NCBI GenBank assembly: GCA_002269645.1
Contig: NIVC01001896.1
Location: forward strand, 1 to 64,000
Source: Macrostomum lignano
Lineage: Eukaryota
Reading direction: 5' to 3'
Length of the DNA stretch: 64,000 bases
This document shows, in pieces, positions 1-42,747 of this stretch. Made by a program: the position numbers and the translations under genes. How positions within the stretch are numbered: the stretch's first letter is position 1; each line of letters starts with the position of its first letter. Under the pieces are notes generated by a model. The model was not told where the DNA came from. It was given only the letters and a program-made list of their open reading frames with translations, and ran no database searches.

Positions 1-2905
1 AGCCCTTTTTTTCCACTGGGTTGTCATATATGTTGTATTTGCACAACATATTAGTTATATTTATAACCACTTTAATTTGTCATATACCTTTGTCTACTCT
101 CTACAACAATGATTATTATATAATGTGATTCTAAATGCTTAGCCAACACATAGTTTATAATTTCCAAAAAGGCAGTATTAAAAATTTCTTATTATTGCAT
201 TTGGAAATTTTCTATTTTTACAATAATTATACAGTCTATACTAGGCCTAATCATTTAAAATTTGTAGTCTGTTAAAAATATTTAGTTTTAGATAACTTTA
301 GTATCAATGTTGTATTATTTGCAAAATTTAGGTGTTTTTCTAAAAAAGCAAAAGTAAAAATAGTATATAGGCCTAGGCCTAAGCACAATCTAAGTCAAGG
401 AATACTTGAAGGCAAAATGGTTTAGGGGCCATAGTCAAGAATGTGGCCTTTATGCCAGAAAATTCCAGCATATTTTGCCCTAGTTGACAATCTTGGTATA
501 CACTGGGCATATAGAATTTTCAGGTTCAACATCAAGTATACACAGTTGATATATAAAAATAGCCAAGTTCAGGTCCTATGTATATTGTATAATAAAATAT
601 CAACAAACAATCTTGAAAGCTCTAGCTTAAAATAATTGGAAACAAAAAAAATAAATGAGATGGGGCGGAGAAAGGTTTGGTAGTAGGTGGGATTGTCCGG
701 TGGTCGCTTGATTTAATGTCGAGTATGAGCAGCTCAGGCCTTTGAATTGGCGCCGTCGTTAATTTGCACAGATTAAATCCAGAAAATTTGTGTGGACAAA
801 TCCCAGTTGAAATGTCTCGTAGATACTCTGACTGCCAGGGTCCTCAATCCCAGGAGGAGGATAGTTTTAGTTGTAGGCAAGCGGTCTTTGTTGGTGCGAG
901 CATTCAGAGCATGTCCTCAGATACCGAATTTAATGTATCTCGTATGCTTGACGTAACTTGTTACTAACAGTAGAGTAGCGCTGCCACCATCGTAATTTGT
1001 GTATTATGGAACGTTGAAGCCTCAGAGCTTGCTTTGAGATGAGACTGATGGGTTATTTTATGCCCCACGGGCAAATGACTCAATATAAAACTAGGCTTCA
1101 GGTTATCAGAGAGAGATTAATGTCATATTAATTGTTTTATTAAGACTTCAGCGGCAATATACTAATTTACCTAGTAATTAAAAAATAAAAATTAGATTCA
1201 CCAAATGTATTAAATAATCAAACAGGACCGTGACCACTCTGGCAGATGATTGGCTGGTGCCGCAGTGCACAAGCTACTGAATAGATAGACTAGGTGCAAC
1301 TAAACTGGCGGACTTAAAAATATTAGAAATTAAATTAAAAGGTAGAAGGGAAACGGAAAGAAGAAAAGGGAATAAAAGGAAGGCAAGTAAGGAAAGGGGG
1401 ATAAGAAAAATTAGGTGGCTCCAGAGGGCACCAATATATCAGACAAAATATATGCAACAAGTGGTTCAAAGGGGTCAAACGCTGGTGGCAAAGGGTGGTC
1501 ACATAGATCAAGTAAGGAACAGACAGAAAATAACATGGAAAATAGGGTGATAAACAAGGTTTCCAACAGAGGGATGCAAAAGACAAAACAAACCAGCCAC
1601 TGGGGCACAAGGTGGGCACACAGGACCAAAACTGGGGACAGCGGGGAATGGGTCAAGGGTGGTTTATTATTAAGTCACAAAAAATTAAATTTCAAAATTA
1701 AAGTATTAACGTTCATTAGATTGTCAGTGGCAGCCCCTAACTGCCACATAAAAATAATGAAATTTACAAGAAAAAATTAAATTAAAACAAAGAATAGGCC
1801 CTATTTGTTTTAGCAAAAAGTTATTTTAAAGTTCAGTAAAACTCTTATATTTTTAAAAATATACATTCTCTAAAAAGTTGGCATAGGCCTTATAAGGCCT
1901 AGAATGTTTATATTCAACATACAAACTATTTGGCCTATGGCCCTATTGCCTATATTAAATAAGTTAAAATATTTTTTAAATGTTAAATAAACCAATTGCA
2001 GTTAGTTAGTAGGGCCTAGTCATTAGATTAAAAGTTAAGTAAGTCAATAAGAAAATAAGTCTGAAGCAATCACTAAATATAGAAAATACTAGACCAACCA
2101 ATGCCTACACTTTTTGTGGTTGCTACGATTTGCTACATAATTCGCTGCTAAGGCTTATTAGGCCATACCAAATTAAATGTATGATATGGCACTATATTAT
2201 ATATTTTATTTATATAATATAATTATAATATTTCTCTCTCATAGTCTAAACGAATTTGCTCTGATCAATAACGGCTGGTCTTCACCATGGGCTTTTCATA
2301 TTGCTTGTTCTGGTTCCAGAACCAGAACCAATTTGTGAAGTATAACTTTTTGTCTCCATAACTAGAGGGAGATACGTGCTATAAAGTTTTTATTATTGAA
2401 TGACAATCGCCAAGAAGAAACCGAAAAATTGTGCAAAGTAAGGCTGTTAAGGCAGACAAACATTCAACAAAATTAAATAGTTATACTGCTGTTTTTCTTG
2501 GAAGATTCAAACCGATTCTGATTCTGGAATCGGTAATATGAAAAGCCTCAATCAATCAATCCACATCCACAATTTCTAATAAAAACTTTAAAGCAAAGAA
2601 ATACATGTATTGAATACATCCGTACATATATTTTTAGTCAATAAAGCCAGCAGTAATTGTGTAATTTTGACATTACCTAGTGTGACACGAGTGCGTGGGC
2701 ATAAAATTGAAAAAAACAAGACTTTTCATTCCAGCTTACACCTGCCATGATTTAGAGTAGGCCCTATATGGTTTGAATGCAAAGCAACAGTTATCATTTA
2801 GACTGTTTCAAATAAGTGCCAAAAATTCAACTCATTTTACTGTTGCATCATTTGCCTATATTAGGAGATTTTATTATAGTTTAGAAAAATAAAGCACTAG
2901 AAGAT

Positions 2906-4579
2906 GTGTTCTTGAAGTCGAAGGTTGTTGTTATAGTCAATACCGATGACTATAACAACAAACTCCACAGTATCATCCAAGACCAAACCAAATTCCAGTG
3001 CCTGGGCACTCATGACACTGTCACCATGTCGCATCCCATCCTCAAAGCCGAACAATCTCTTCAAAATTTCCTCCGCAACCATATCAAACAACACATCGAA
3101 CCAAACATCTATCAGCATATCTTACCTAGTGGCAGTCAACCGGGACAACTCTACGGGGTTTGTAAAGTCCACAAACCTGACAATCCTCTTAGACCAATTG
3201 TCTCCATGGTCAACACCGCCGAATACGAAGTTGCCAAGTACCTGGATTCTCTTATCAAGCCCTGCATTCCTTCCAATTTCATGTCCAAATCCAACAAAGA
3301 CTTCCTCAATGACCTTCAAAAGTTCAACCCTACGCTCAACAGATCTGACTCTCTATGTAGTTTTGATGTTGTTTCTCTCTTCACCAACATCCCCCTTGAT
3401 CTGGCCATTGACTATGCCACTGAGTTAGTGTATAACACGAACCCTCCCACCATGGCCAAGTCGTCCTTTAGAAAACTCCTGGGCTTTGCTACCTCTGGAA
3501 TCTTTATGTTTGACAATAAATACTATAGGCAAGTTGATGGCTGTGCCATGGGAAGCCCCTTGGCCCCCACTCTGGCGAATGTCTACTTGGCCCATTGGGA
3601 AACCGAAAACTGGATGTCTCTCAACTGTGCCCCCAAATTCTACAGGCGCTACGTTGACGATACATTTGCCATCTTTGATCAGGAGCAAAAAATTGATCAG
3701 TTCCTCCACGCTCTCAACTCCACTCATAAGAACATAAAATTCATGGTTGAACATGCTGTTGACCAAAGACTCCCCTTCCTGGACATTGACATTGACTACA
3801 GTAAGGAAACCCTCTCCACAAAAGTCTTCCGTAAGAAAAGCTTTACCAATCTCATTCTCAACTTCTAAGCCACTTGCCCCAGACAATGGAAAACTGGGCT
3901 CGTGAGGTGTTTGCTCCATAGTCATAGAGCTTTCACTACCTGTAACACCTGGATCAACTTTGACCGGGAGGTGCAGTTCCTCACTAGACTGTTCCATCAA
4001 AATGACTACCCCGTTTGTCTAGTCCAAAAAATCGTCAACAAGTTCATCTTGGACAAAATCACCAAACAAAAACCTGAGCAATCTGTCACCACTGAAGAAT
4101 TTGAACCCATTCTGCGTCTCCCCTTCCTCGGACCTCCATCTCTAGCCTTTAAAAACAGAATGCGTAGGTTATTCTTTGCCTCTTTCAATCGTAACATCCG
4201 GGTCGTCTTCCACACGAACAAGATTGGGAACTTTGTTAGCAGATTAAAGTCGCGTGTTCCTTGTACTCTGCGTGCAGGTGTTGTCTACCAATTTAACTGC
4301 TCTGTGGACCAGAGCGTCTCCTACGTGGGGAAAACCAAAAGACACCTACACACGAGGATCAGGGAACACTGGCTCAAACCATCTGCTATACAAACTCACC
4401 TCCTTGAATGCACTAACTGCAATGACTGCAAACCAGAAGAACACTTTAAAATCATTGACCAAAGCCATACTGACGCCAAACTTAGAATTCTCGAGGCCCT
4501 GCACATAAAAGCTCAGACCCCGAATCTCAACACCCAATTACAACATAGTGGTGCAGGTCACGTTCTCCGCGTTTTCTGA
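2906..4579 (+). mobile_element. Penelope-like retroelement (PLE), 5'-truncated: reverse transcriptase + GIY-YIG endonuclease, interrupted by one in-frame TAA (3866-3868)
   Basis: ORFs 2906-3868 and 3902-4579 are in the same frame. RT motifs: LYGVCKVHK, LRPIVS, FDVVSLFT, GCAMGSPLAPTLAN, YRRYVDD, LPFLD. GIY-YIG: GVVYQFNC...SYVGKTKRHLHTRIREH, plus His/Cys residues (THLLEC) typical of Penelope endonucleases. The ORF starts at VVIVNTDDYNNK with no N-terminal domain. Confidence 0.93.
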
Positions 4580-4927: not shown

Positions 4928-5544
4928 ATTGAAATCATATTCAAATGTTGATATTAAGCTTTCTATTTATTCTTCTTGCCAAGCGAGCGACTCTACCAGC
5001 ATAAAACATTGGAGACCTAGAAAAGTAATTTTTTAAATTGAAAAATATAGGAAGGTTTGCACTCGATTCATACATAGATCCTATTAAGAGGTTTTTAAAA
5101 ACACTTAGTTTATGAAATTGGTTCAAGAATAACAAAGTTATTACCATTTTACTGTGAAAATTTCTTTGACCTTTGTAGTAGGCCTAGGCCTATATTTTTC
5201 ATCAAGGACTATGACTTATAAATATAGGCCTATAGCCTATATAGGCCTAATAATAAAAAATGTTTGAAAATGCAAGTCAAAAATTGTATGAATGTTTTAA
5301 ATAAAAAATAACAAAGTCAAAAGTAAATAAAGAAATAGTAAATTTTGTAAAAGAAAATGTTTTTAATAAAAATATGAAAATCAAATTTCAGGATAAAAAA
5401 ATTTTTATTTTAACTTTTTATACATCTAGGCTAGGCCTATAGTATTAAATGTCATTTTAGCATATAATACCTTTTAAGTTTTATTCATGTTTGTGATTTT
5501 TTTCTTTATTTTTAGGTAGACATTTTATGGTAGGCCTAGACATA

Positions 5545-6955
5545 GTGGCAAGTCTGCAAAATAGAGCACCATGTAGGCTTCCAATGGTAGGATGCAGCCT
5601 ATAATGGCTTGGGCGCATGCCAGCTGTTGATGCTCAATGGACAGGCATGTAGCTAGTATCGTGCCAATGCCCCAAGTCCTCTAGCAATAGTTGGCAACTG
5701 CCTAGATGGTAGTTAAGTATGCTAGGTATAGGGTCACACCTCGCCTAGTCCATCCCTATACTACAATTGTTTAAGGCCACAAGTGGATGGCATTGGGCTG
5801 CCATGCAGGAATGGACATTGGCTGCATAATGTTAAAAGGTCAATTGGCTATCTAGCCAGACCCCTAGGATGATAGGTACTTCTTCAAACAAGAGCAAGGT
5901 GCCTCTAATCTAGAGATCAACCTGCTTTTTCTTGCAAGTCTCCCAGGGGTTCCCAGACCTTCCAGTTATGGCACAAGGCCTCCTCAGTGTCTAGGGCCAG
6001 CTGCAGCTAGGTGGCACAGATGTCAAGGCTCCGTACTATTGTAAGCAACATTAGTCATCTGTGTAGAGGCTAAGCATATTGTCTCTATGAGGTCATTGAT
6101 GTAAACTAGCTAGAGTATAGGTGCTAGGACACTACCTTGGGGAAGGCCTTTGTGGAACACATATTCCTGACTATTGCACTGGCCCTTTTAGATGTGGGTA
6201 TGGTGGTTGGTGATAAATCCTTGGATCTAGCATAGCATGCACTTGGAGATGGTGAAGTTTGGCAAGCAGGTCATTCTGCCACACCTTATCATAGGTGCAG
6301 CTAAAATCCTATCAAGGATTGCCTAGCAAATATGTGCTACCTGCTCCTCAGTGGAATGGCCGCATTGAAAGCCAGTCTGGGTACCACTGAGGAGCCAGTT
6401 GGACTCCAGGTGATGACAGAGCTATTAGAGTACCATCTGCTTAGCCAGCTTAGCAATGGTGCTGGTCAGTGCAACTGGCTAGTATGACTCCAGTTTGCTA
6501 CCATTTTCTCCCATTTTGGGATAGGCACTATATGGCTATGCTTCCATTGAGCAAAGCAGATGCTAGTATGCCAAGTGGCATTAATGAGTCCCAATCCCAA
6601 CAGTTATTGCCTACTAGTCATTGGCAGGTGTTTTAGCATGCTGTTGTAGACTGCATCTGGCCCAGGGACCTTGAGTGCATAGAGTGCAACCTGCAGTTCC
6701 ATTAGCAAGAACAGTGCACAAAAGCCCTGTTCACTATAGTAGCATAGTGTCCACATGGTGGCATTCGCTTAATGTGTGACTGTGCAGTCCTTTGGACATT
6801 GCAGAACCCTGGGGATAGAGCTGTATAGTTGGCAAAACAGCTCTGCCTTCTTTAGATTTATTTGCATAGGTTGCACAAAGGCCTACATGCCCATTTAGGG
6901 CCTGTGGATTGTGACACTATTCTTCTGCTTGCCATTCCTCTAATGGCAAGCAACA
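5545..6955 (-). pseudogene. Degenerate non-LTR retrotransposon (LINE) reverse transcriptase relic
   Basis: Manual minus-strand translation gives KVPGPDAVYNSMLKHLP (~6670-6620), SY*PVALTSTIAKLAKQMVL**L, GFQCGHSTEEQ, GLPQGSVLAPIL*LVYINDL (~6148-6090) and YTDD (6065-6054), with many stops and frameshifts. Confidence 0.9.
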
Positions 6956-7065
6956 GGTAAAAGAGGTCACTTTTGATGTCTATTGATGGTGGCTATTGCT
7001 GTTGCTTTGCTTGTTGCTATAGCTATTGCTGCTGTTGCTTTGGCTGCGGCTGTTACTGCGGCTAT

Positions 7066-8150
7066 TATGAGGGGTGCTTATTAAGTTCCCGAAAAGTTCA
7101 GTTCTAATTATTGCATCTGTACGGAATTTTACCTGCAGCAACTGCAGTCTATTATAACTTCTCAACATAATTTCCACGCAAATTGGAGCACTTTTGCAGG
7201 CACTGGAACCATGCATTGAAGCACCCCCTGAGATCAGCTTTGGTGAAGCTGTCCAGCTCAGCTTGTAGCGCAAAAACCAGCTCCTCCCTCGAGTCAAAGT
7301 GCTTCCCCTCCAGATTTTTCTTTATTCTGGGAAATAGGAAAAAAGTCAGCAGGCACCAGGTCCAGCAAATATGCCGGATGTGGCTGCTCAACAAGCTGGG
7401 TTGCCTGAAGGAATTCCTAGGTCACTTGTGCCCAGTGTGCAGGAGCATTGTCCTGATGGAGGAAGATGCCTTTGTCAAGCGTCTTTGGCCGCTGTTGTGC
7501 AAGCGCCTGCAGGATGCTATTGCGTCAGAAGAAAGTAGCCGCCATCACTCTCCCGAGGCTGCACTCGCGATGAAATTTGAGAGGAGCATCTTCCTCATTG
7601 GTAACGCACTGCCGACTCTACTCTTTGCTCTCTAGGTCATAAAAGTAGACCCAGGTTTCGTCGCCAATGAGGATGTTATCCACCAACTGTGAGTGGCCTC
7701 CATCAAACCTGGCTACCATGAGGTTGGCAAACTCAACTCAGGCTCGCATCTGGTCAGCGCTAAGCTGGCGGGGTACCTAGCAAGCAGACAGCTTCCTCAT
7801 GCCAAGGTGCTAGTGCAGGATCTTAATGATAGTGGAATCTGACACCCCAACAAGCTGCTCCAACCAGTGAATCATCACTCGCTGATCTTCGTCTACATGG
7901 CATGAAACAGCAGCAACAACTCCGTCAGACACAGCCAAACTTGGCTGCCCCTCGCAAGGATCGTTGTCCAGAGTGGCCGAGCCACAGCGGAAGTACGCAA
8001 ACTACTCATACACCAACTGGGATGATGCTTGATCCTGAAGAGCTTCATGCAGCATCTGGAGGCAGGTGGCTGCAGAGCTGCCCAGCCAAAACTGTACCAA
8101 GATTGCCACTCGCCTGTTGCAGTCAGTCAGCTATGGCAAGGGGGCACTTT
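7066..8150 (-). mobile_element. Mariner (Tc1/mariner) transposase relic
   Basis: Minus-strand motifs: E*FAYFRCG, KLSAC*VPRQL (WVPREL-like), IGDETWVYFYD (7665-7640), FLHQDNAPAH (7458-7435), FFLFPRIKKNLEG...GNYVEKL. A TA followed by TGAGGGGTGCTTATTAAGTTCCCG at 7066-7091 resembles a mariner TIR. The matching right TIR was not recognised. Confidence 0.88.
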
Positions 8151-8935
8151 TTCAGCCAAACTTTGGCCACTGCAGCGGATCATTGCGACCAATTAAGCTA
8201 AAATTTTACAAGCAAACATAGAACTGCTTCATTTTAAAGAAAACTTTATATGCATGCTAGTAATAAAACACAGCAGAAAAATACCTAAACTATTCACAGA
8301 TATTCAATTACAAAAATCCTTATCATGGTTTCTATGGCAGGGAAGGGCTGATAGCTACTTGACATCAGAAGATACTTACAATTGAGTGACTGCTTGCTAT
8401 TGAAGAAAGCCCAATTTCAGGGGGTGCTTGCTATTAGAAAGAAAGGCAGGGAATGCTTGCTATCAGGAGATGATTCCTATTATTGCATCTTTATTGTATG
8501 TTTGAATTAAAGTTAAGAATTCAGATAGGGTCTAATTTAGTGATAGTTCCAATTTTGTTTAGCTGACCTGCAGTTAGGGCTTATAAATATGCACAGATAC
8601 TGGTTAATAAAAGAAAATAACACAAAGGCAATGAGATGTTGATTAATATCTTGGCTAATATTCTTATATCAATTACTTCATAACATATTTCATTTCATCA
8701 CATAATAAGTTTTAAAAGTTCTGTATCTTTACTGTCATAAAATAATGCAAAAGTGAAGCAGAAATAGAATATAAAAAAGAACACCAGTACAATGGACCAT
8801 GGACGAGCAATACAAAAGATGGGGGGACATACTCAGACCTTATTCTAAGAACTAAGCTCCGAAGTTAATTATAGTTTAGTACAACTTTAGTGATAGCAAT
8901 TGAGATTTAAAGAGAAAAGTTTGGCCCATGAATAG

Positions 8936-9085
8936 ATTAGGACAGAAGGAAGAGGAAAGAAGGGAGAAAAAAAAGAGAGAAGAAAGAGAAGAGAGGGAGA
9001 TGAAAAAAGAGGAAAAGGAGAAAATAGAGGGAAAAAGAGTAGAAAAGAAAAAAGGAAAATATAGAGAAAAAAGAACTGAAGAAAG
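8936..9085. repeat. A/G-rich low-complexity tract
   Basis: Almost purely purine (GAAGAGGAAAAGAAGG...); it explains the F/S/L-rich spurious minus-strand ORFs. Confidence 0.8.
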
Positions 9086-10170
9086 ACACAAACCTTAAGC
9101 AGGCCAGATTTTTATTGTAAAGTTTCAATGGACCCAAGGGCTAGATAAAGTAAGGCTTTATAGCCATTACAAGCTATGGGGGGTGCTCCAAAAGTCCTTT
9201 CCTTTTTGAACATAGCTCTTGCAATACTGCTCCAATTTGAATGTGGTTTTTGACTATAAAAAGATGCACTTTAGCTCAAAAGTTTTGCAATTTGATCATT
9301 TTTTCTATCTATTATGGTACTTTTAGGTCTAGTTCTTACCAAAATCAAAGGGCATTGCACAATAATATTTCCACTGATTATTACATTAGACATAATTCAA
9401 ACTTGAACTATTTTTTTAATTTTGAGGTTAGCATTGATCTGTAGATAGTTCTGTATTAGCAAGGCACTCTTTCAATCATTATATAGCATTGCTCTGCTAG
9501 CATAAGCCACTAAGGCATATAGAATACTAGGTAAATGCTATCTTCCAAGTTGCTGTCTGGTGCTTGCATGAAAGGATTGCACTAAGAGGTTTACAATACT
9601 AGTTTGTCTCAGCTTATGGTTTGAAATTGTCACAAAGTAATAATAATATGTCACAATTGCATAGCATAGCAGTGCTCTGTGCACTGAGTTGAAGAGCTAA
9701 AAAGCCTTTAGTAGTACTATCTGAATTCACATTGTTCATATGCTCTGGTTAATTGAAGTCTAGTTCATATAGGTACAACACCTAGTCAATCCAATTAAGT
9801 GGCCAAGGCTATTGCAAAACTAATCAATCAAACACCAAGAAAAAAGCATGACATATTCAATAATTTAATTATATAACCATGCCCAGGTTCTGGTTTTTAA
9901 TTCTTCAGTCAAATAAACTGGATCAGTTGTGGGAAGTATGGTCTGATAGTCTTTGTGTTAGATTGTAATGAAAGTCCATGTAACCAGACTGCAAAATGTC
10001 ATAATAAGAGAACTGAGATGGAGAGGCTACCACGTCAACTGAAAACATGCAACAAATATACAAAAATTTGCTCACTTAAAAACACAAAAAGACACAAGGA
10101 GACTCAAAGAGACTATAAGATGGGTTAGAAGAGTAACAATAATGGGTTACCATGCAAAAAATGATTTCAG

Positions 10171-13005
10171 TCTGCTGCTAATAATCTGTTCAGCCGCTCG
10201 CCTGAAGTTTGCGTACGCGACGCACTTCGAGGCTTAGTTATTGCCGATCCGAGTTTGGCATTGATTGCCAGAACTGGCAGCTCTAGTAGTGAAGGCGTCG
10301 GCGGGGTGGTTATTCGTAGAGAGCCTCGCGGCTCGCCTACAGGCAATCGGGTTCGCGTGATAAGCGGCGGCGGTGCCGGGCATGAGCCTGCCTACGTCGG
10401 ATTTGTCGGAGAAGGACTTCTCGACGCTGCTGTGTCGGGTCACGTGTTTGCGTCGCCAGCTCCTAATGACATCTTGGAAGCGATTCGCCAACTGGCTTGT
10501 CCCTCTGGTCTGCTAGTATTGATTATGAACTACACAGGCGATAGATTGAACTTTGGTCTAGCCGCTGCCAGGGCTCGAACTAGCGACCTTCGCTGTCGAA
10601 TGTTTGTCTGTGACGATGATGCGTCGATTAAGGATCCGGCGCCGGCTGTTGGCCGACGTGGCATCGCTGGCAGCCTGCTGATGATGAAGCTGGCCTGCGG
10701 CCTGGCAGATTCTGGGCTGGATTTAGACTGCATAGTGGATCGGTTGGAAAGTTTAAGGACCCGAATTGCTACTGTGGGTGCCTGCAGGCTGCCGACAGGC
10801 GACTGGGAGCTCGGGCTGGGGATTCACGGTGAAGCTGGTGTCGGTCTGTTGAAAAGTCATCAAAGCTCCATGGAAGCCGTGGTTGGAGCCGTTGTTAAGA
10901 AACTACTGGCAGATGAACGCATTGAGAAATCTATGAATAAAGTTAAAAGACAAGAAAGCTCTTCGTCTGCCTCTTGTGCCATGCTAATCAATGGATTAGG
11001 CGGATTATCGAATTTGGAATTATCTGGAATAGCGTCTGTAGCTTTTGAGACAGTGACCGCCGTTTCTAACCTACCTGTGCGTCGTTTGTACATCGGCAAT
11101 TTGATGACGTCATTGTCTGCTCCGGGATTTTCCGTTAGTCTACTGTTGCTGCTAGGCCAAGATGATAAAGGCTGGATTCTGGAAACATTGGACTTGCCGG
11201 CGCGAAGGTAGAGGGTTGGAATCTAGTTTTTTTGGGTCAATATCACTATCTGTGGCATGAAAATCCTCCCTGTGAAAACGGTACCGTGACAAGAGTCGCT
11301 AGAGGAGCATACATGCGCAACTTTGGGAATCACTCGGCCGTTTCTATTGGCAACACACACATTTAAGTCGCTATTGGCTGAGAGCAGTCACGTGACTACT
11401 ATTCCGTCCAATAGCGGCTTACATGTGTATGTTGCCAATAAAAACGGCCGGGTGAATCCCTAGGTTGCGCCCAAGCATGCACTAGAGTCATTCTAAAGAA
11501 CTCACTAATGAGTGTAGCGTCTCTTGTGACTTTTTTAATGACTTGAACGACTGTATTGCGTAAAATAGTCGCGAAAAATTCGTCTAAGAGACGTTGCGTT
11601 AAGCGCTTAACTTTCTACTCATTCAAGTAGACTAAATAGAGTTGTTACTTTAAATGCGAAATGCGATTCTAATTCATAAAGTGACGCAGATGCGTTCTAA
11701 TTACGACTCTTCGCCCCAGAGTCGCAGACAATAAAACGCCTCAAATGGACTCTTCGGCGGCTCTTTGAAGACTTTTTGTCGACTTGTACTACTGGGACAT
11801 CTTGTCGTTTAAGTGTTACCTGCAACGAATCTGAAACGACTCTGGGGCGACGAAAGTCACTCTGGGCCTTGGTACCGTTTTTATCGGGCGTTTTTTGTTG
11901 CTATGGAGATTCTAATCAGCTGACTGGATTTGAAATCCCAATCTAGTTGTTATGGAAATCCTGATCAGCTGACTGGATTGAAAATTCCAATCTAGTTGCT
12001 ATGGAAATCCTGATCAGCTGACTAGATTGAAAATCCCAATCTAGTTGCTATGGGAATCCTGATCAGCTGACTGGATTGAAAATCCCAATCTATCTATATC
12101 CATAATATCTATATAGATATAGATATATCTATAAGAGTTCACAGTTTACTCAATGCAAACCCATTCGAATTTCACTCAGGTGGCCAGCCGCTTCCTCGCC
12201 AAGCGTTCTGCGGCCCGATCAACTCGAACTAGCCGCCCTTCCATCTGACCCGACCTCTGCATCGTCTGACAGCAGCATTCCCTGGCAATCAGCCGAGTCT
12301 CTGAGCTCAGCCCTAGCATCACTGAGCGCCGTGGCCGCAGCTCTCATCGATGCCAGATCGATTCTGAATCAGCTGGATTCTGTTGGCGGACTTGGAGACG
12401 GAGACTGCGGCGATACCATGTACAGGGGAGCGGTTGCTATGCAGAAGTTTGTTGAGCAGCCTAGCAACGCCATAGTAACGGTTAGTAGCGGGCCTAGGCG
12501 GTTGCTAGCTGAGTTATCCAGCCTGGCCCAGAGCGACATGGGCGGCAGTTCCGGAGCTCTGTTCGGCATCGGCCTGGCAGCTGCAGCCGCTTCGGTCTGT
12601 CAGTCACCATTTGATGCACGCAGCGCCATTGCCGCCCTGTCCACTGCGGCTGGCGCCATCTCGGAGGCTGGTCGAGCTCGGCAAGGCGATCGGACAATGC
12701 TGGACACTGTGTACGGTTTCTTAGAAGCATTCGATGCCGGCCTATCAGCTGATGAGGTTTGGCAGAGGCTGCCAAGAGCGGTCAGGCTGGCTCGTGATGG
12801 GGCTGTTGCCACGGCTCAGATGAAGCCTCGAGCTGGTCGAGCTGCCTACGTTGGCGCTGAGCTGTCCTCAACCTCTGAATCCGAAGCTCGGCCAGACCCT
12901 GGAGCATGGGCCGCTCTGATTATTTTGCGAACTGTTTGCCGAGCTGTTGGAGTCGCTGTTGAGGACACGGAAGCTGAAGATGCCGCGGTGCTTGGTTCCG
13001 GTTAA
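10171..13005 (+). CDS. TKFC: Triokinase/FMN cyclase (dihydroxyacetone kinase, DhaK+DhaL fusion); exons 10171-11207 and 12180-13005; no in-frame ATG found
   Basis: Dak1 motifs: SGGGAGHEPA, GHVFASP, NYTGDRLNFGLA, GRRGIAG, ELGLGIHGEAG. Dak2 motifs: LDSVGGLGDGDCG, GGSSGALF, GDRTMLD, AGRAAY, PDPGA. Donor AAG|GTAGAG at 11207 and acceptor CTCAG|G at 12179 keep the frame (ARR-WP). AATAAA at 13077-13082. Confidence 0.93.
11268..11888. mobile_element. Non-autonomous TIR element (MITE-like) in the TKFC intron, with an internal 156-bp palindrome
   Basis: Ends CCCTGTGAAAACGGTACC and GGTACCGTTTTTATCGGG are imperfect inverted repeats. An internal inverted repeat spans 11315-11470, and TCGCCCCAGAGTCG (~11711) is inverted relative to CGACTCTGGGGCGA (~11838). 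No target-site duplication identified. Confidence 0.55.
11898..12093. repeat. 49-bp tandem repeat x4 (TKFC intron)
   Basis: Unit TTGCTATGGAAATCCTGATCAGCTGACTGGATTGAAAATCCCAATCTAG. Confidence 0.9.
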
Positions 13006-13204
13006 ACTTCCTTATCTAAAGTTTGTTAGAACTCTGATTAAATGTCATTGATTTTTATTACCTTTACTTATCATTCAATAAATCACCACACTAATCGATA
13101 CTTTAGCTTTTGCGGTGGCAGTTTAACACTCTTATAAGATTCTTCTCCTTTATTCATTGAGAAATCGAGCATAGGTTTCTCTTCAAGTGCCCTAGAGTCC
13201 TCCA

Positions 13205-13735
13205 GTGTACACTGACAGCCTTGTCCCTCTATCCCCTAATGTACACTGACAGCCCGTCCCTCTATCCCCTAATGTACACTGACAGCCCGTCCCTCTATCC
13301 CCTAATGTACACTGACAGCCCGTCCCTCTATCCCCCAATGTACACTGACAGCCCTGCCCCTCTATCCCTCAATGTACATTGACAGCCCTGCCCCTCTATC
13401 TCTCAATGCACACTGATAGCCCTGCCCCTCTATCTCTCAATGCACACTGATAGCCCTGTCCCTCTATCTCTCAATGCACACTGATAGCCCTGTCCCTCTA
13501 TCCCCCAATGTACACTGACAGCCCTGCCCCTCTATCCCTCAATGTACATTGACAGCCCTGCCCCTCTATCTCTCAATGCACACTGATAGCCCTGTCCCTC
13601 TATCTCTCAATGCACACTGATAGCCCTGTCCCTCTATCTCTCAATGCACACTGATAGCCCTGTCCCTCTATCTCTCAATGCACACTGATAGCCCTGTCCC
13701 CCTACCCCCTAGTGTACACGGAAAGCCCCGCCACT
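13205..13735. repeat. 33-34-bp minisatellite between TKFC and SLC4A1AP
   Basis: Unit TACACTGACAGCCC(T)GTCCCTCTATCCCCTAATG, about 15 copies. Confidence 0.92.
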
Positions 13736-13818
13736 CTATACTAGTGTAAAGCTTATTCATTTCTTTCAAAACATTTCAGCTTTCACCTGCCATCAATTTA
13801 TTAATAAAAATCGAAAAA

Positions 13819-16800
13819 ATGTCATCAATTGATTCGGCTGACACAGAATCCAAGCAATCTGCAGCCGCATCAGCAGAGCCGGCAGATGCAAAAGATTCAG
13901 AAACCGCTTCAGTTGAAGAACCGAGAAAACCTGTGGTGTTTAAAATGCCGCAGATTTCTGCAGCTCCGGTGTTGAATAAGAAATTACTGAAACAGCCGCA
14001 GCAGAAGCAGCTGCCAGCAGTAGAAGCAGTCGAGACAGAAACTCAATCAGATAATTCCTCTGATGTCAATCAAACTGAACTCGAACCGAAGCAAAATAAA
14101 GTCACGCAGCAGCAGCAGCAGCAACAGGAGGGCTCGTCATATATTCAACCGCATTGGGGTGGCCGCTGTCAAGGACCCTACTCTCTGCAGGTGCTCAAAT
14201 CTGGCGTAGAAGTTCAGAATTTGGATTTGCAAGGCCGGTCCTGTCTGACTATTGGTCGCCAGAGCGACTGCGACCTGCGCCTGGAGCACCCGTCACTGTC
14301 CAGGTGGGTTGTCTGGTGGCTGGTGTATGAGAATCATCATTTGATAATCTGCTATGATAATCCATGATAATCCTTGATATGATAACGATAATCTCCATGA
14401 TTATCATAATCTATGATAATCCTTTGATAATCCAATTTGAGAATCGCCCTTTGATAATCCACTATGAGAGAATCGCCCTTTGATTATCCAATATGAGAAT
14501 TGATAATCCACTATTGAGAAATGATAATCCACTATTGAGAATTGATAATCCACTATTGAGAAATGATAATCCACTATTGAGAATTGATAATCCACTATTG
14601 AGAATTGATAATCCACTATGAGAAATGATAATCCACTATGAGAATCGATAATCCACTATTGAGAATTGATAATCCACTATGAGAATCGATAATCCACTAT
14701 TGAGAATTGATAATCCACTATGAGAAATGATAATCTACTATGAGAAATGATAATTTACTATGAGAATTGATAATCCACTATGAGAATTGATAATCCACTA
14801 TTGGGAATTGATAATCCACTATTGAGAATTGATAATCCACTATTGAGAATTGATAATCCACTATTGAGAAATGATAATCCACTATTGAGAATTGATAATC
14901 CACTATGAGAAATGATAATCCACTATTGGGAATTGATAATCCACTATTGAGAATTGATAATCCACTATTGAGAATTGATAATCCACTATTGAGAAATGAT
15001 AATCCACTATTGAGAATTGATAATCCACTATGAGAAATGATAATCTACTATGAGAATCGCCCTTCACAATGCCAAATGCAGGCACCACGCAGTGATGCAG
15101 TACAGCGGTGCGGCAGACTCAGCATCAGAGTCTGAGCAGGCAGACTCCACTCGCTATCCATCAGGCTGGTACCTGATAGACCTGGGCAGCACACACGGCA
15201 CTCTGGTTAACAAAGTTAAGCTGCCTCCGCAACAGTACAGACGATTAAGAGTTGGTCACGTGATCAGGCTGGCCGGCAGCACCCGACTGCTGGTTCTGCA
15301 AGGTCCGGAGAGCGATCAGGAGGCTGAGTCTGAGCTCACCTATACCCAGCTAAAGGAGAGGAGGGATAGGTAATGCTTTGCCAGCATTTCATTTCTAAAC
15401 TAGACGATTTTTTGTGTACGATATGCTTTTCCGTTTTTTGTTAATCTAATGGATATTTTCGGGTTTTTTTGTTTATCTAATGCAATATTTTCCGGGTTTT
15501 TGTTTACCTGATCGACTCATTTCCGGGTTTTTTGTTTATCTGATGAAATATTTTCCGGGTTTTTGTTCATCTGAATGAATATTTTCTGAGGGTTTTGTTT
15601 ATCGAATCAAATATTTTCCGGGGTTTTTGTTTATCTAATGAAATATTTTCCTGTTTTTTTGTTTATCTTATTGAATATTCTGCGGGGTTTTTGATTATCT
15701 ACTAGAATATTTTCCGGGGTTTTGGATGAAAAAATGTTCGGTTTTTATGTTTGTTAATTTAAAGAAAGATTTCCGGGTTTTTTATTTAATGACTAGTTTC
15801 CGAGTTGATTGCAAGCGTAATCAAAAAAGCCTTACAACCAGCCAGTCGATTTTATTCAACTCTAAATTCATGACTCAAATTTACGTTTGAGCCTACTGTG
15901 TAAGTAGTATAGATATGTCTTGTTTCTAATTCTAATATTATTTTTTTGTTTTCTTTTCACTTTTAGGCGGCGCATCGAACAGCAGATGAAGCAGAATGCC
16001 GAGCTGCAGTCACCCTCCGAAAGGGATGGCAACAGCGGCGGCGGTGGCGGCTGTACCTGGGGCTTCGCTGAGGATGCAGTTGATGAGGCTGAGGAGTCTG
16101 CTGAGCAGCAGCTGTCTGGCAAGGATGGGTAAGTTACTGTAGACCTCTGTGATACTGCTCAGTGCCCTGCCAGATCCTCAGTTGCTGGACCAGCCTCCCA
16201 GATCCTCAGTTGCTGGGCTAGCCTCCCAGATCCTCAGTTGCTGGGCCAGCCTCCTAGATTATCAGTTGCTGGGCCAGCCTCCCAGATCCTCAGTTGCTGG
16301 ACCAGCCTCCCAGATCCTCAATTGCTAGGCCAGCCTCCCAGATCCTCAGTTGCTGGGCCAGCCTCCCAGATCCTCAGTTGCTTGGCCAGCCTCCCAGATC
16401 CTCAGTTGCTGGGCCAGCCTCCCAGATCCTCAGTTGCTGGGCCAGCCTCCCAGATCCGCAGTTGCGCCTCGAGTGCATATACCTTGTGATGAAGCTGGCC
16501 AAAACAGGTCAGTAAATCCTTTTCTTGAAGAAAATTATCATCTCAGGTGTGACTGTTTATTCAACTCCATCGTGCAAGCGGCACATTTTATTATTCTCTT
16601 TACCTGCCGAAAGCAGCAAAACAGCCGTCTTTGACTGGAGAAAAGATTTATCCATACAAAAACATATTGAAATCCACAGCTGCTCCTGTCCTCTTTTGAT
16701 GCTGAATAGATGCAGGTTGTTTGCAGAATTTCATAAAGATGACCGGGTGTTGACAGTGCAGCTTGATGAAAATATGGGGAAAGAGTGTGATGTTAAACAG

Positions 16801-40085: not shown

Positions 40086-42747
40086 TCAGGGATCGGGATC
40101 AGGGATCGGGATCAGGGATCGGGATCAGGGATCGGGATCAGGGATCGGGATCAGGGATCGGGATCAGGGATCGGGATCAGGGATCGGGATCAGGGATCGG
40201 GATCAGGGATCGGGATCAGGGATCGGGATCAGGGATCGGGATCAGGGATCGGGATCGGGATCAGGGATCGGGATCAGGGATCGGGATCAGGGATCGGGAT
40301 CAGGGATCGGGATCAGGGATCGGGATCAGGGATCGGGATCAGGGATCGGGATCAGGGATCGGGATCAGGGATCGGGATCAGGGATCGGGATCAGGGATCG
40401 GGATCAGGGATCGGGATCAGGGATCGGGATCAGGGATCGGGATCAGGGATCGGGATCAGGGATCGGGATCAGGGATCGGGATCAGGGATCGGGATCAGGG
40501 ATCGGGATCAGGGATCGGGATCAGGGATCGGGATCAGGGATCGGGATCAGGGATCGGGATCAGGGATCGGGATCGGGATCAGGGATCGGGATCAGGGATC
40601 GGGATCAGGGATCGGGATCAGGGATCGGGATCAGGGATCGGGATCAGGGATCGGGATCAGGGATCGGGATCAGGGATCGGGATCAGGGATCGGGATCAGG
40701 GATCGGGATCAGGGATCGGGATCAGGGATCGGGATCAGGGATCGGGATCAGGGATCGGGATCAGGGATCGGGATCAGGGATCGGGATCAGGGATCGGGAT
40801 CAGGGATCGGGATCAGGGATCGGGATCAGGGATCGGGATCAGGGATCGGGATCAGGGATCGGGATCAGGGATCGGGATCGGGATCAGGGATCGGGATCAG
40901 GGATCGGGATCAGGGATCGGGATCAGGGATCGGGATCAGGGATCGGGATCAGGGATCGGGATCAGGGATCGGGATCAGGGATCGGGATCAGGGATCGGGA
41001 TCAGGGATCGGGATCAGGGATCGGGATCAGGGATCGGGATCAGGGATCGGGATCAGGGATCGGGATCAGGGATCGGGATCGGGATCGGGATCAGGGATCG
41101 GGATCAGGGATCGGGATCAGGGATCGGGATCAGGGATCGGGATCAGGGATCGGGATCAGGGATCGGGATCAGGGATCGGGATCAGGGATCGGGATCAGGG
41201 ATCGGGATCAGGGATCGGGATCAGGGATCGGGATCAGGGATCGGGATCAGGGATCGGGATCAGGGATCGGGATCAGGGATCGGGATCAGGGATCGGGATC
41301 AGGGATCGGGATCAGGGATCGGGATCAGGGATCGGGATCAGGGATCGGGATCAGGGATCGGGATCAGGGATCGGGATCAGGGATCGGGATCAGGGATCGG
41401 GATCAGGGATCGGGATCAGGGATCGGGATCAGGGATCGGGATCAGGGATCGGGATCAGGGATCGGGATCAGGGATCGGGATCAGGGATCGGGATCAGGGA
41501 TCGGGATCAGGGATCGGGATCAGGGATCGGGATCAGGGATCGGGATCAGGGATCGGGATCAGGGATCGGGATCAGGGATCGGGATCAGGGATCGGGATCA
41601 GGGATCGGGATCAGGGATCGGGATCAGGGATCGGGATCAGGGATCGGGATCAGGGATCGGGATCAGGGATCGGGATCAGGGATCGGGATCAGGGATCGGG
41701 ATCAGGGATCGGGATCAGGGATCGGGATCAGGGATCGGGATCAGGGATCGGGATCAGGGATCGGGATCAGGGATCGGGATCAGGGATCGGGATCAGGGAT
41801 CGGGATCAGGGATCGGGATCAGGGATCGGGATCAGGGATCGGGATCAGGGATCGGGATCAGGGATCGGGATCAGGGATCGGGATCAGGGATCGGGATCAG
41901 GGATCGGGATCAGGGATCGGGATCAGGGATCGGGATCAGGGATCGGGATCAGGGATCGGGATCAGGGATCGGGATCAGGGATCGGGATCAGGGATCGGGA
42001 TCAGGGATCGGGATCAGGGATCGGGATCAGGGATCGGGATCAGGGATCGGGATCAGGGATCGGGATCAGGGATCGGGATCAGGGATCGGGATCAGGGATC
42101 GGGATCAGGGATCGGGATCAGGGATCGGGATCAGGGATCGGGATCAGGGATCGGGATCAGGGATCGGGATCAGGGATCGGGATCAGGGATCGGGATCAGG
42201 GATCGGGATCAGGGATCGGGATCAGGGATCGGGATCAGGGATCGGGATCAGGGATCGGGATCAGGGATCGGGATCAGGGATCGGGATCAGGGATCGGGAT
42301 CAGGGATCGGGATCAGGGATCGGGATCAGGGATCGGGATCAGGGATCGGGATCAGGGATCGGGATCAGGGATCGGGATCAGGGATCGGGATCAGGGATCG
42401 GGATCAGGGATCGGGATCAGGGATCGGGATCAGGGATCGGGATCAGGGATCGGGATCAGGGATCGGGATCAGGGATCGGGATCAGGGATCGGGATCAGGG
42501 ATCGGGATCAGGGATCGGGATCAGGGATCGGGATCAGGGATCGGGATCAGGGATCGGGATCAGGGATCGGGATCAGGGATCGGGATCAGGGATCGGGATC
42601 AGGGATCGGGATCAGGGATCGGGATCAGGGATCGGGATCAGGGATCGGGATCAGGGATCGGGATCAGGGATCGGGATCAGGGATCGGGATCAGGGATCGG
42701 GATCAGGGATCGGGATCAGGGATCGGGATCAGGGATCGGGATCAGGG
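40086..42747. repeat. Near-perfect 13-bp tandem array (GGGATCAGGGATC)n, about 200 copies
   Basis: Period 13 with occasional extra GGGATC hexamers. The three >900-aa ORFs (GSGSGIGIRDRDQ)n arise because the plus-strand unit contains no stop codon. Confidence 0.99.

Follow-up and report, generated by a model that had tools for sequence, protein, structure and literature searches.

The gene for triokinase/FMN cyclase (TKFC) of the flatworm Macrostomum lignano lies in the first 64,000 nt of contig NIVC01001896.1 (assembly Mlig_3_7, GCA_002269645.1), a stretch that we call the window, and its coding sequence (CDS) begins without an ATG. Judging from its sequence, the genome probably encodes all residues of this enzyme except the initiator methionine, which would be supplied by the AUG at the 3′ end of the spliced leader (SL) through trans-splicing at position 10171. 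We assign this reading a probability of about 0.85.

The ATG-less 5′ end of TKFC

Read directly, the sequence runs from 10171 as TCT GCT GCT AAT AAT CTG TTC, and a scan for open reading frames (ORFs) found the exon 1 frame open from 10165 to 11208. The first-pass annotation had described an in-frame TGA at 10162–10164, a TTTCAG acceptor with its AG at 10169–10170, a phase-0 start and the lack of an ATG, all of which proved exact to the base, and it had claimed that one added methionine gives MSAANNLFSRSPEVCVRDALRGLV, with which our translation agrees, the frame remaining intact. In this frame an ATG first occurs at codon 119 (10525), within ‘LIMNYTGD’. The 400 nt 5′ of TKFC hold 12 ATGs when all frames are counted; the ORFs that these open are no longer than 36 codons, and not one runs into the TKFC frame. 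When an ATG is placed directly before 10171, an open frame of 347 codons results in exon 1, which grows to 621 codons once the intron is removed by cis-splicing (Table 1).

The commonest motif at M. lignano trans-splice acceptors is [T/C]TNCAG (PMC8629364). Of the 23 AG dinucleotides in 10080–10330, the one at 10169–10170 is the only one that carries this motif, and it is also the only one that yields a full-length ORF when an ATG is joined to it. The match to the motif is supportive and not decisive, because [T/C]TNCAG is common, at about 2.4 occurrences per kb with both strands counted.

The public annotation, which is based on RNA-seq, places the start of the TKFC CDS at 10171 and flags it as 5′-partial. 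The recorded ranges are CDS ranges, since those of TKFC and of the downstream gene, which encodes an FHA-domain protein, both end exactly on stop codons. A 5′-partial CDS at 10171, combined with an in-frame TGA at 10162, therefore means that the mRNA model begins at 10169–10171, right after the acceptor. In Mlig_3_7, RNA-seq reads were assembled into transcriptional units, TBONE split the units into genes at poly(A) sites and where SL-trimmed reads peaked, and ORFs were then called by TransDecoder; by the naming convention, gene names with a common prefix were cut from one transcriptional unit (PMC5730564). At the paralogous locus on NIVC01003099.1, three consecutive genes bear the prefix BOX15_Mlig021613: g1, a 51-aa ORF lying 3.8 kb upstream; g2, which is TKFC and is likewise “partial”; and g3, the FHA gene. 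With g2 placed between g1 and g3, TKFC occupies an internal position in a multi-gene unit. The 5′ boundary of an internal gene in this pipeline derives from an SL signal, which for TKFC constitutes strong documentary evidence and, by way of the annotation method, points to SL addition. The TKFC gene IDs were not found in the full texts of papers, nor were the IDs or the name TKFC found in the supplements of PMC5816591 and PMC5730564.

The spliced CDS (10171–11207 joined to 12180–13005) comprises 1863 nt and encodes 620 residues without an initial methionine. This product is identical to the NCBI entry PAA62824.1 (“BOX15_Mlig026051g5, partial [Macrostomum lignano]”), which starts S-A-A-N-N and is on record at 10171–13005 of the contig. 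Pfam searches assigned Dak1 (PF02733, E = 2.9e-74) to exon 1 and Dak2 (PF02734, E = 1.3e-34) to exon 2, and, as far as domain content and homology can tell, this is a genuine TKFC/dihydroxyacetone kinase with Dak1 and Dak2 in one chain. It matches the dihydroxyacetone kinase of Citrobacter freundii (PDB 1UN8/1UN9) over the full length, with query residues 13–598 aligned to residues 11–546 of the 1UN9 chain, so that chain residue 11 pairs with TKFC residue 13, and it contains the GGGAGHEP and NYTGD motifs, as in the comparison with the Citrobacter enzyme. Identity to the best homologues outside Macrostomum is 37–41%, and a short insertion (RTGSSSSEGVGG) follows residue 35 of the M. lignano protein.

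The N-termini of homologues follow the pattern M-x(1-4)-KKLIN....V.D.L.GLV, as in Ostrea (MSSKKLINSVDRCVDEALEGLV) and Capitella (MASKMLINTPSDCVDECLRGLV). In most full-length homologues that start with methionine and have the motif near the N-terminus, V.D.L.GL begins 12–20 residues from the methionine; with a methionine added, it begins at residue 16 in the M. lignano protein. This offset within the homologue range, together with the start of the 1UN9 alignment, argues that only the initiator methionine is missing. The proposal that the N-terminal length matches that of human TKFC thus holds insofar as the length agrees with animal, fungal and plant homologues.

All five database models (P0001 and P0121–P0124) begin S-A-A-N, and a methionine-bearing 621-aa version is absent from a collection of 15 billion proteins. 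P0001 (UniProt A0A1I8J344; 591 aa) is without PSGLLVLIMNYTG and has about 30 residues around KKLLADERIEK... replaced; from these differences we take it for a probable mis-modelled copy rather than a true isoform, and such mis-modelling would account for its identity to TKFC of 89%. P0001 lies on no recorded contig, and RNA-derived (Logan) proteins near-identical to TKFC were not found.

SL-AUG initiation in flatworms and its likely use at TKFC

As relayed by citing papers, Cheng, Cohen, Ndegwa and Davis reportedly found (J Biol Chem 281:733, 2006) that the 3′-terminal AUG of a flatworm SL serves as the initiator methionine. SL-AUG initiation in flatworms, credited to Cheng et al. 2006, is restated in PMC9851317, PMC12582326, PMC5832876 and PMC7653826. 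According to PMC9851317, the SL AUG falls in frame in 28% of those S. mansoni transcripts that are trans-spliced, more than 40 cDNAs need it, and the ORFs initiated in this way are named ‘slORFs’. M. lignano has one SL of 35 nt, CGGTCTCTTACTGCGAAGACTCAATTTATTGCATG, which ends in ...TTGCATG (PMC8629364; PMC10468722), about 30% of its genes are trans-spliced (PMC8629364), and the final ATG of the leader has been described as a translation start codon in Macrostomum (PMC10468722). The suggestion in the first-pass annotation that flatworm leaders end in an AUG usable as initiator is therefore borne out, both by the ATG at the end of the M. lignano SL (PMC8629364) and by the precedent in PMC9851317, PMC12582326 and PMC7653826. 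An SL RNA gene was not found in the 64-kb window when up to 5 errors were allowed.

The arrangement at TKFC resembles that of the slORFs of Cheng et al. 2006: the leader ends in AUG, the acceptor sets this AUG in frame against a conserved N-terminus, and a genome-encoded AUG is absent. It differs in that those cases come from Schistosoma, whereas M. lignano is a free-living macrostomorph and the gene is TKFC, and in that the earlier work reportedly relied on cDNA cloning and reporter assays, whereas for M. lignano TKFC the annotation is what points to SL addition and to translation from the SL AUG. In every feature that can be tested on the sequence, the locus fits the flatworm SL-AUG class. 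The literature searched yielded no list of SL-AUG-dependent M. lignano genes, or of M. lignano genes without an AUG of their own.

We infer the following course of events. The TKFC primary transcript would belong to a multi-gene transcriptional unit and begin at some point upstream, probably at a distance of kilobases, and trans-splicing at the TTTCAG would join it to the SL. The leader’s 3′ end (...CAATTTATTGCATG) would thereby place an AUG directly before the TCT at exactly 10171, forming the junction ...GCATG followed by TCTGCTGCTAAT, and from this AUG translation would start, giving a protein of 621 aa with MSAANNLFSR at its N-terminus. A transcript that escapes trans-splicing could not make TKFC, because the frame is closed by the TGA at 10162 and is never reached from the upstream ATGs.

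Alternative explanations and implications

Several points weigh against an SL-supplied start. The polypyrimidine tract 5′ of the 10170 acceptor is weak (aaaaaatgatttcag), and acceptors in flatworms are often common to cis- and trans-splicing (PMC12582326), hence a minor cis-spliced isoform is possible. A demonstrated case of SL-AUG translation for any M. lignano gene was not found in the literature searched, and the collections searched gave no M. lignano RNA contig for the TKFC protein. Furthermore, the agreement among the three genomic copies of the gene described below says little on long-term conservation, because these are 97–99% identical.

The shared use of acceptors bears on the likeliest of the alternatives, namely that a cis-spliced upstream exon with an ATG, maybe the tiny coding tip of an exon in the 5′ untranslated region, was missed and joins the 10170 acceptor, making the SL unnecessary or one option of two. 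A scan of the 5.5 kb 5′ of TKFC for stretches of an ATG and whole codons ending at a GT donor returned 104 raw candidates. These include weak phase-0 ATG...GT candidates at 9879–9935 (GAAGTATGG), 9968–9979 (CATGTAACC) and 6332–6481 (CTAGTATGA), an ATG directly followed by GTAGG at 5527 and again at 5584, and one GTAAG donor at 6020–6040; a more distant exon is also possible because the mean intron of M. lignano measures about 1.1 kb. However, the preferred donor GT[G/A]AG occurs in only one of the 104 candidates, at a distance of 4.1 kb, no phase-0 ATG followed by GT[AG]AG was found within 4 kb upstream, and the two nearby candidates (9879–9935 and 9968–9979) have poor donors. The candidate at 6332–6481 is not spliced in the paralogue, since the annotated g1 product reads through to its stop (WLV*). 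In two annotated copies, moreover, the RNA-seq-guided annotation has the mRNA/CDS begin at 10171, and N-terminal homology allows only about 1–3 further residues, so that we regard a missed exon as unlikely.

Still less probable, in our view, is a start inside the genomic exon, with or without SL, at a near-cognate CUG (codon 6, 10186) or at the internal AUG of codon 119. Both codons do exist (CTG at 10186, ATG at 10525), and non-AUG initiation has been documented in other SL-using taxa (PMC9851317), but the context of the CTG (aataatCTGt) is unremarkable, initiation at codon 119 would cost Dak1 its conserved GGGAGHEP segment, and an untrimmed leader would hold 12 upstream ATGs. On a trans-spliced mRNA, scanning ribosomes would reach the SL AUG before either site, since it would be the first AUG and in frame.

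We attach equally little weight to the notion that TKFC is a non-functional or untranslated recent duplicate in which the missing ATG reflects decay, or an artefact of annotation or assembly. M. lignano recently became partly polyploid and carries many genes in duplicate, and the window copy differs from the copy on NIVC01003099.1 (locus L002) by 11 non-synonymous and 5 synonymous coding changes, a ratio that is not strongly purifying and for which gene conversion, or a relaxation of constraint following duplication, may be responsible. Against this, the TKFC–FHA pair is present in three copies in Mlig_3_7, all of which retain the 620-codon TKFC ORF and its splice sites intact, and the divergence between the window and L002 is 0.86% in exons, about six times below that of the intron (5.1%) and also below that of the 2 kb upstream (3.9%). 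The gene models derive from expressed transcripts, and the Dak1 and Dak2 matches are strong. The third copy (L003, NIVC01000211.1, TKFC exons at 6335–7371 and 8390–9215) is intact with the same ATG-less junction, has no TKFC protein on record and has Mlig019762g2 as its FHA neighbour. The junction string, aaaaaaTGAtttcag joined to TCTGC, is identical and free of indels in all three TKFC copies, and because none of them has an ATG, its absence appears to be the normal state of the gene and not the decay of one copy.

With an SL-supplied methionine as the preferred explanation, TKFC is a fresh example of a known flatworm mechanism, in a gene that the public annotation already marks as “partial”. 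PAA62824.1, PAA53362.1 and four UniProt entries, which are labelled “partial” or lack a methionine, are probably complete once the SL methionine is added, and pipelines that trim the SL with its ATG will systematically yield “5′-partial” models in the M. lignano genome. The locus would add a metabolic enzyme of a free-living, transgenesis-ready flatworm to the genes with SL-dependent translation, leaving the understanding of the mechanism itself unchanged, and M. lignano offers a convenient system for in vivo tests of SL-AUG initiation. A broader reading, which we hold at even odds, is that TKFC expression is gated wholly at trans-splicing, since without SL there would be no start codon and hence no protein, and that TKFC may be one member of a large hidden class. 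If so, many ‘partial’ M. lignano proteins that start right after [T/C]TNCAG would be complete SL-Met proteins, and selection would fix the acceptor-to-codon junction in such genes, whereas in genes that carry an AUG themselves the leaders would drift.

The FHA gene and other elements in the window

Table 1 Features of the TKFC region, in window coordinates except where a locus is named.
Feature	Position	Strand	Remarks
51-codon ORF	6332–6487 (L002 6008–6163)	+	Paralogue product PAA53361.1 (BOX15_Mlig021613g1), annotated as a separate gene; no Pfam match on record
In-frame TGA	10162–10164	+	Closes the TKFC frame two codons 5′ of the exon; present in all three genomic copies
TTTCAG 3′ splice acceptor	10165–10170	+	AG at 10169–10170; probable SL trans-splice acceptor; fits [T/C]TNCAG
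TKFC coding exon 1 (Dak1)	10171–11207	+	Phase 0, Ser first; ends in AG before donor GTAGAG
TKFC intron	11208–12179	+	Donor GTAGAG, acceptor CTCAG
TKFC coding exon 2 (Dak2)	12180–13005	+	Stop TAA at 13003–13005
AATAAA	13077–13082	+	Motif read directly; likely TKFC poly(A) signal
Tandem repeat	13206–13739		34-nt unit, 15.8 copies; fills most of the TKFC–FHA spacer
Second TTTCAG acceptor	13774–13779	+	Annotated CDS of the FHA-domain gene from 13780; own ATG at 13819

The FHA gene shares with TKFC its strand and its prefix (Mlig026051 g5/g6; in the paralogue Mlig021613 g2/g3), and a spacer of 774 nt (13006–13779), of which 534 nt are tandem repeat, separates the two. The FHA-domain product PAA62825.1 (“partial”, 800 aa) begins LSPAINLLIKIEKMSS, which sets the CDS start at 13780, the first base 3′ of the second TTTCAG and 39 nt before the ATG of the gene itself. 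A reconstruction of this CDS that allowed two introns, both bounded by strong splice sites, gave no solution. Compared with the SL-trans-spliced multi-gene units described in M. lignano (Wudarski et al. 2017, PMC5730564; Ustyantsev & Berezikov 2021, PMC8629364), the spacer is below the repeat-adjusted 1-kb threshold, and the annotated 5′ ends of TKFC and FHA both follow TTTCAG. The two genes thus look like an operon-type pair, in which the annotated CDS start suggests SL use at 13780 as well.

From the acceptor to its own ATG, the FHA leader measures 39 nt in the window, 41 nt in L002 and 40 nt in L003, so that an SL AUG would stand in a different frame in each copy. In the window copy only, the SL AUG would be in frame, and the annotation adds an extension of 13 residues (LSPAINLLIKIEK) and flags the product as partial. 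An SL AUG in L002 (13480–13560) would begin an out-of-frame ORF, 66 codons long, that extends past the real AUG, and one in L003 (9930–10010) an out-of-frame ORF of 18 codons. An invariant TKFC junction versus a drifting FHA leader is what selection on an SL-supplied start predicts, in a tiny sample of young copies.

The 51-codon ORF upstream of TKFC may be a chance ORF in the outron-side part of the TKFC primary transcript and not a real gene. At 2885–4576 on the plus strand, two adjoining ORFs show matches to RVT_1 (E = 2e-11) and, weakly, to GIY-YIG (E = 2e-4, just under Pfam’s cutoff), a pair typical of Penelope-like retroelements. A minus-strand ORF at 7152–7394 may resemble the C-terminus of a mariner transposase, but the Pfam search of this ORF gave no match and we make no assignment. 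Finally, an array at 40086–42747 consists of about 206 copies of a 13-nt unit (TCAGGGATCGGGA) at 98% identity and accounts for a GC-rich block (0.61) with a strong GC skew (+0.5).

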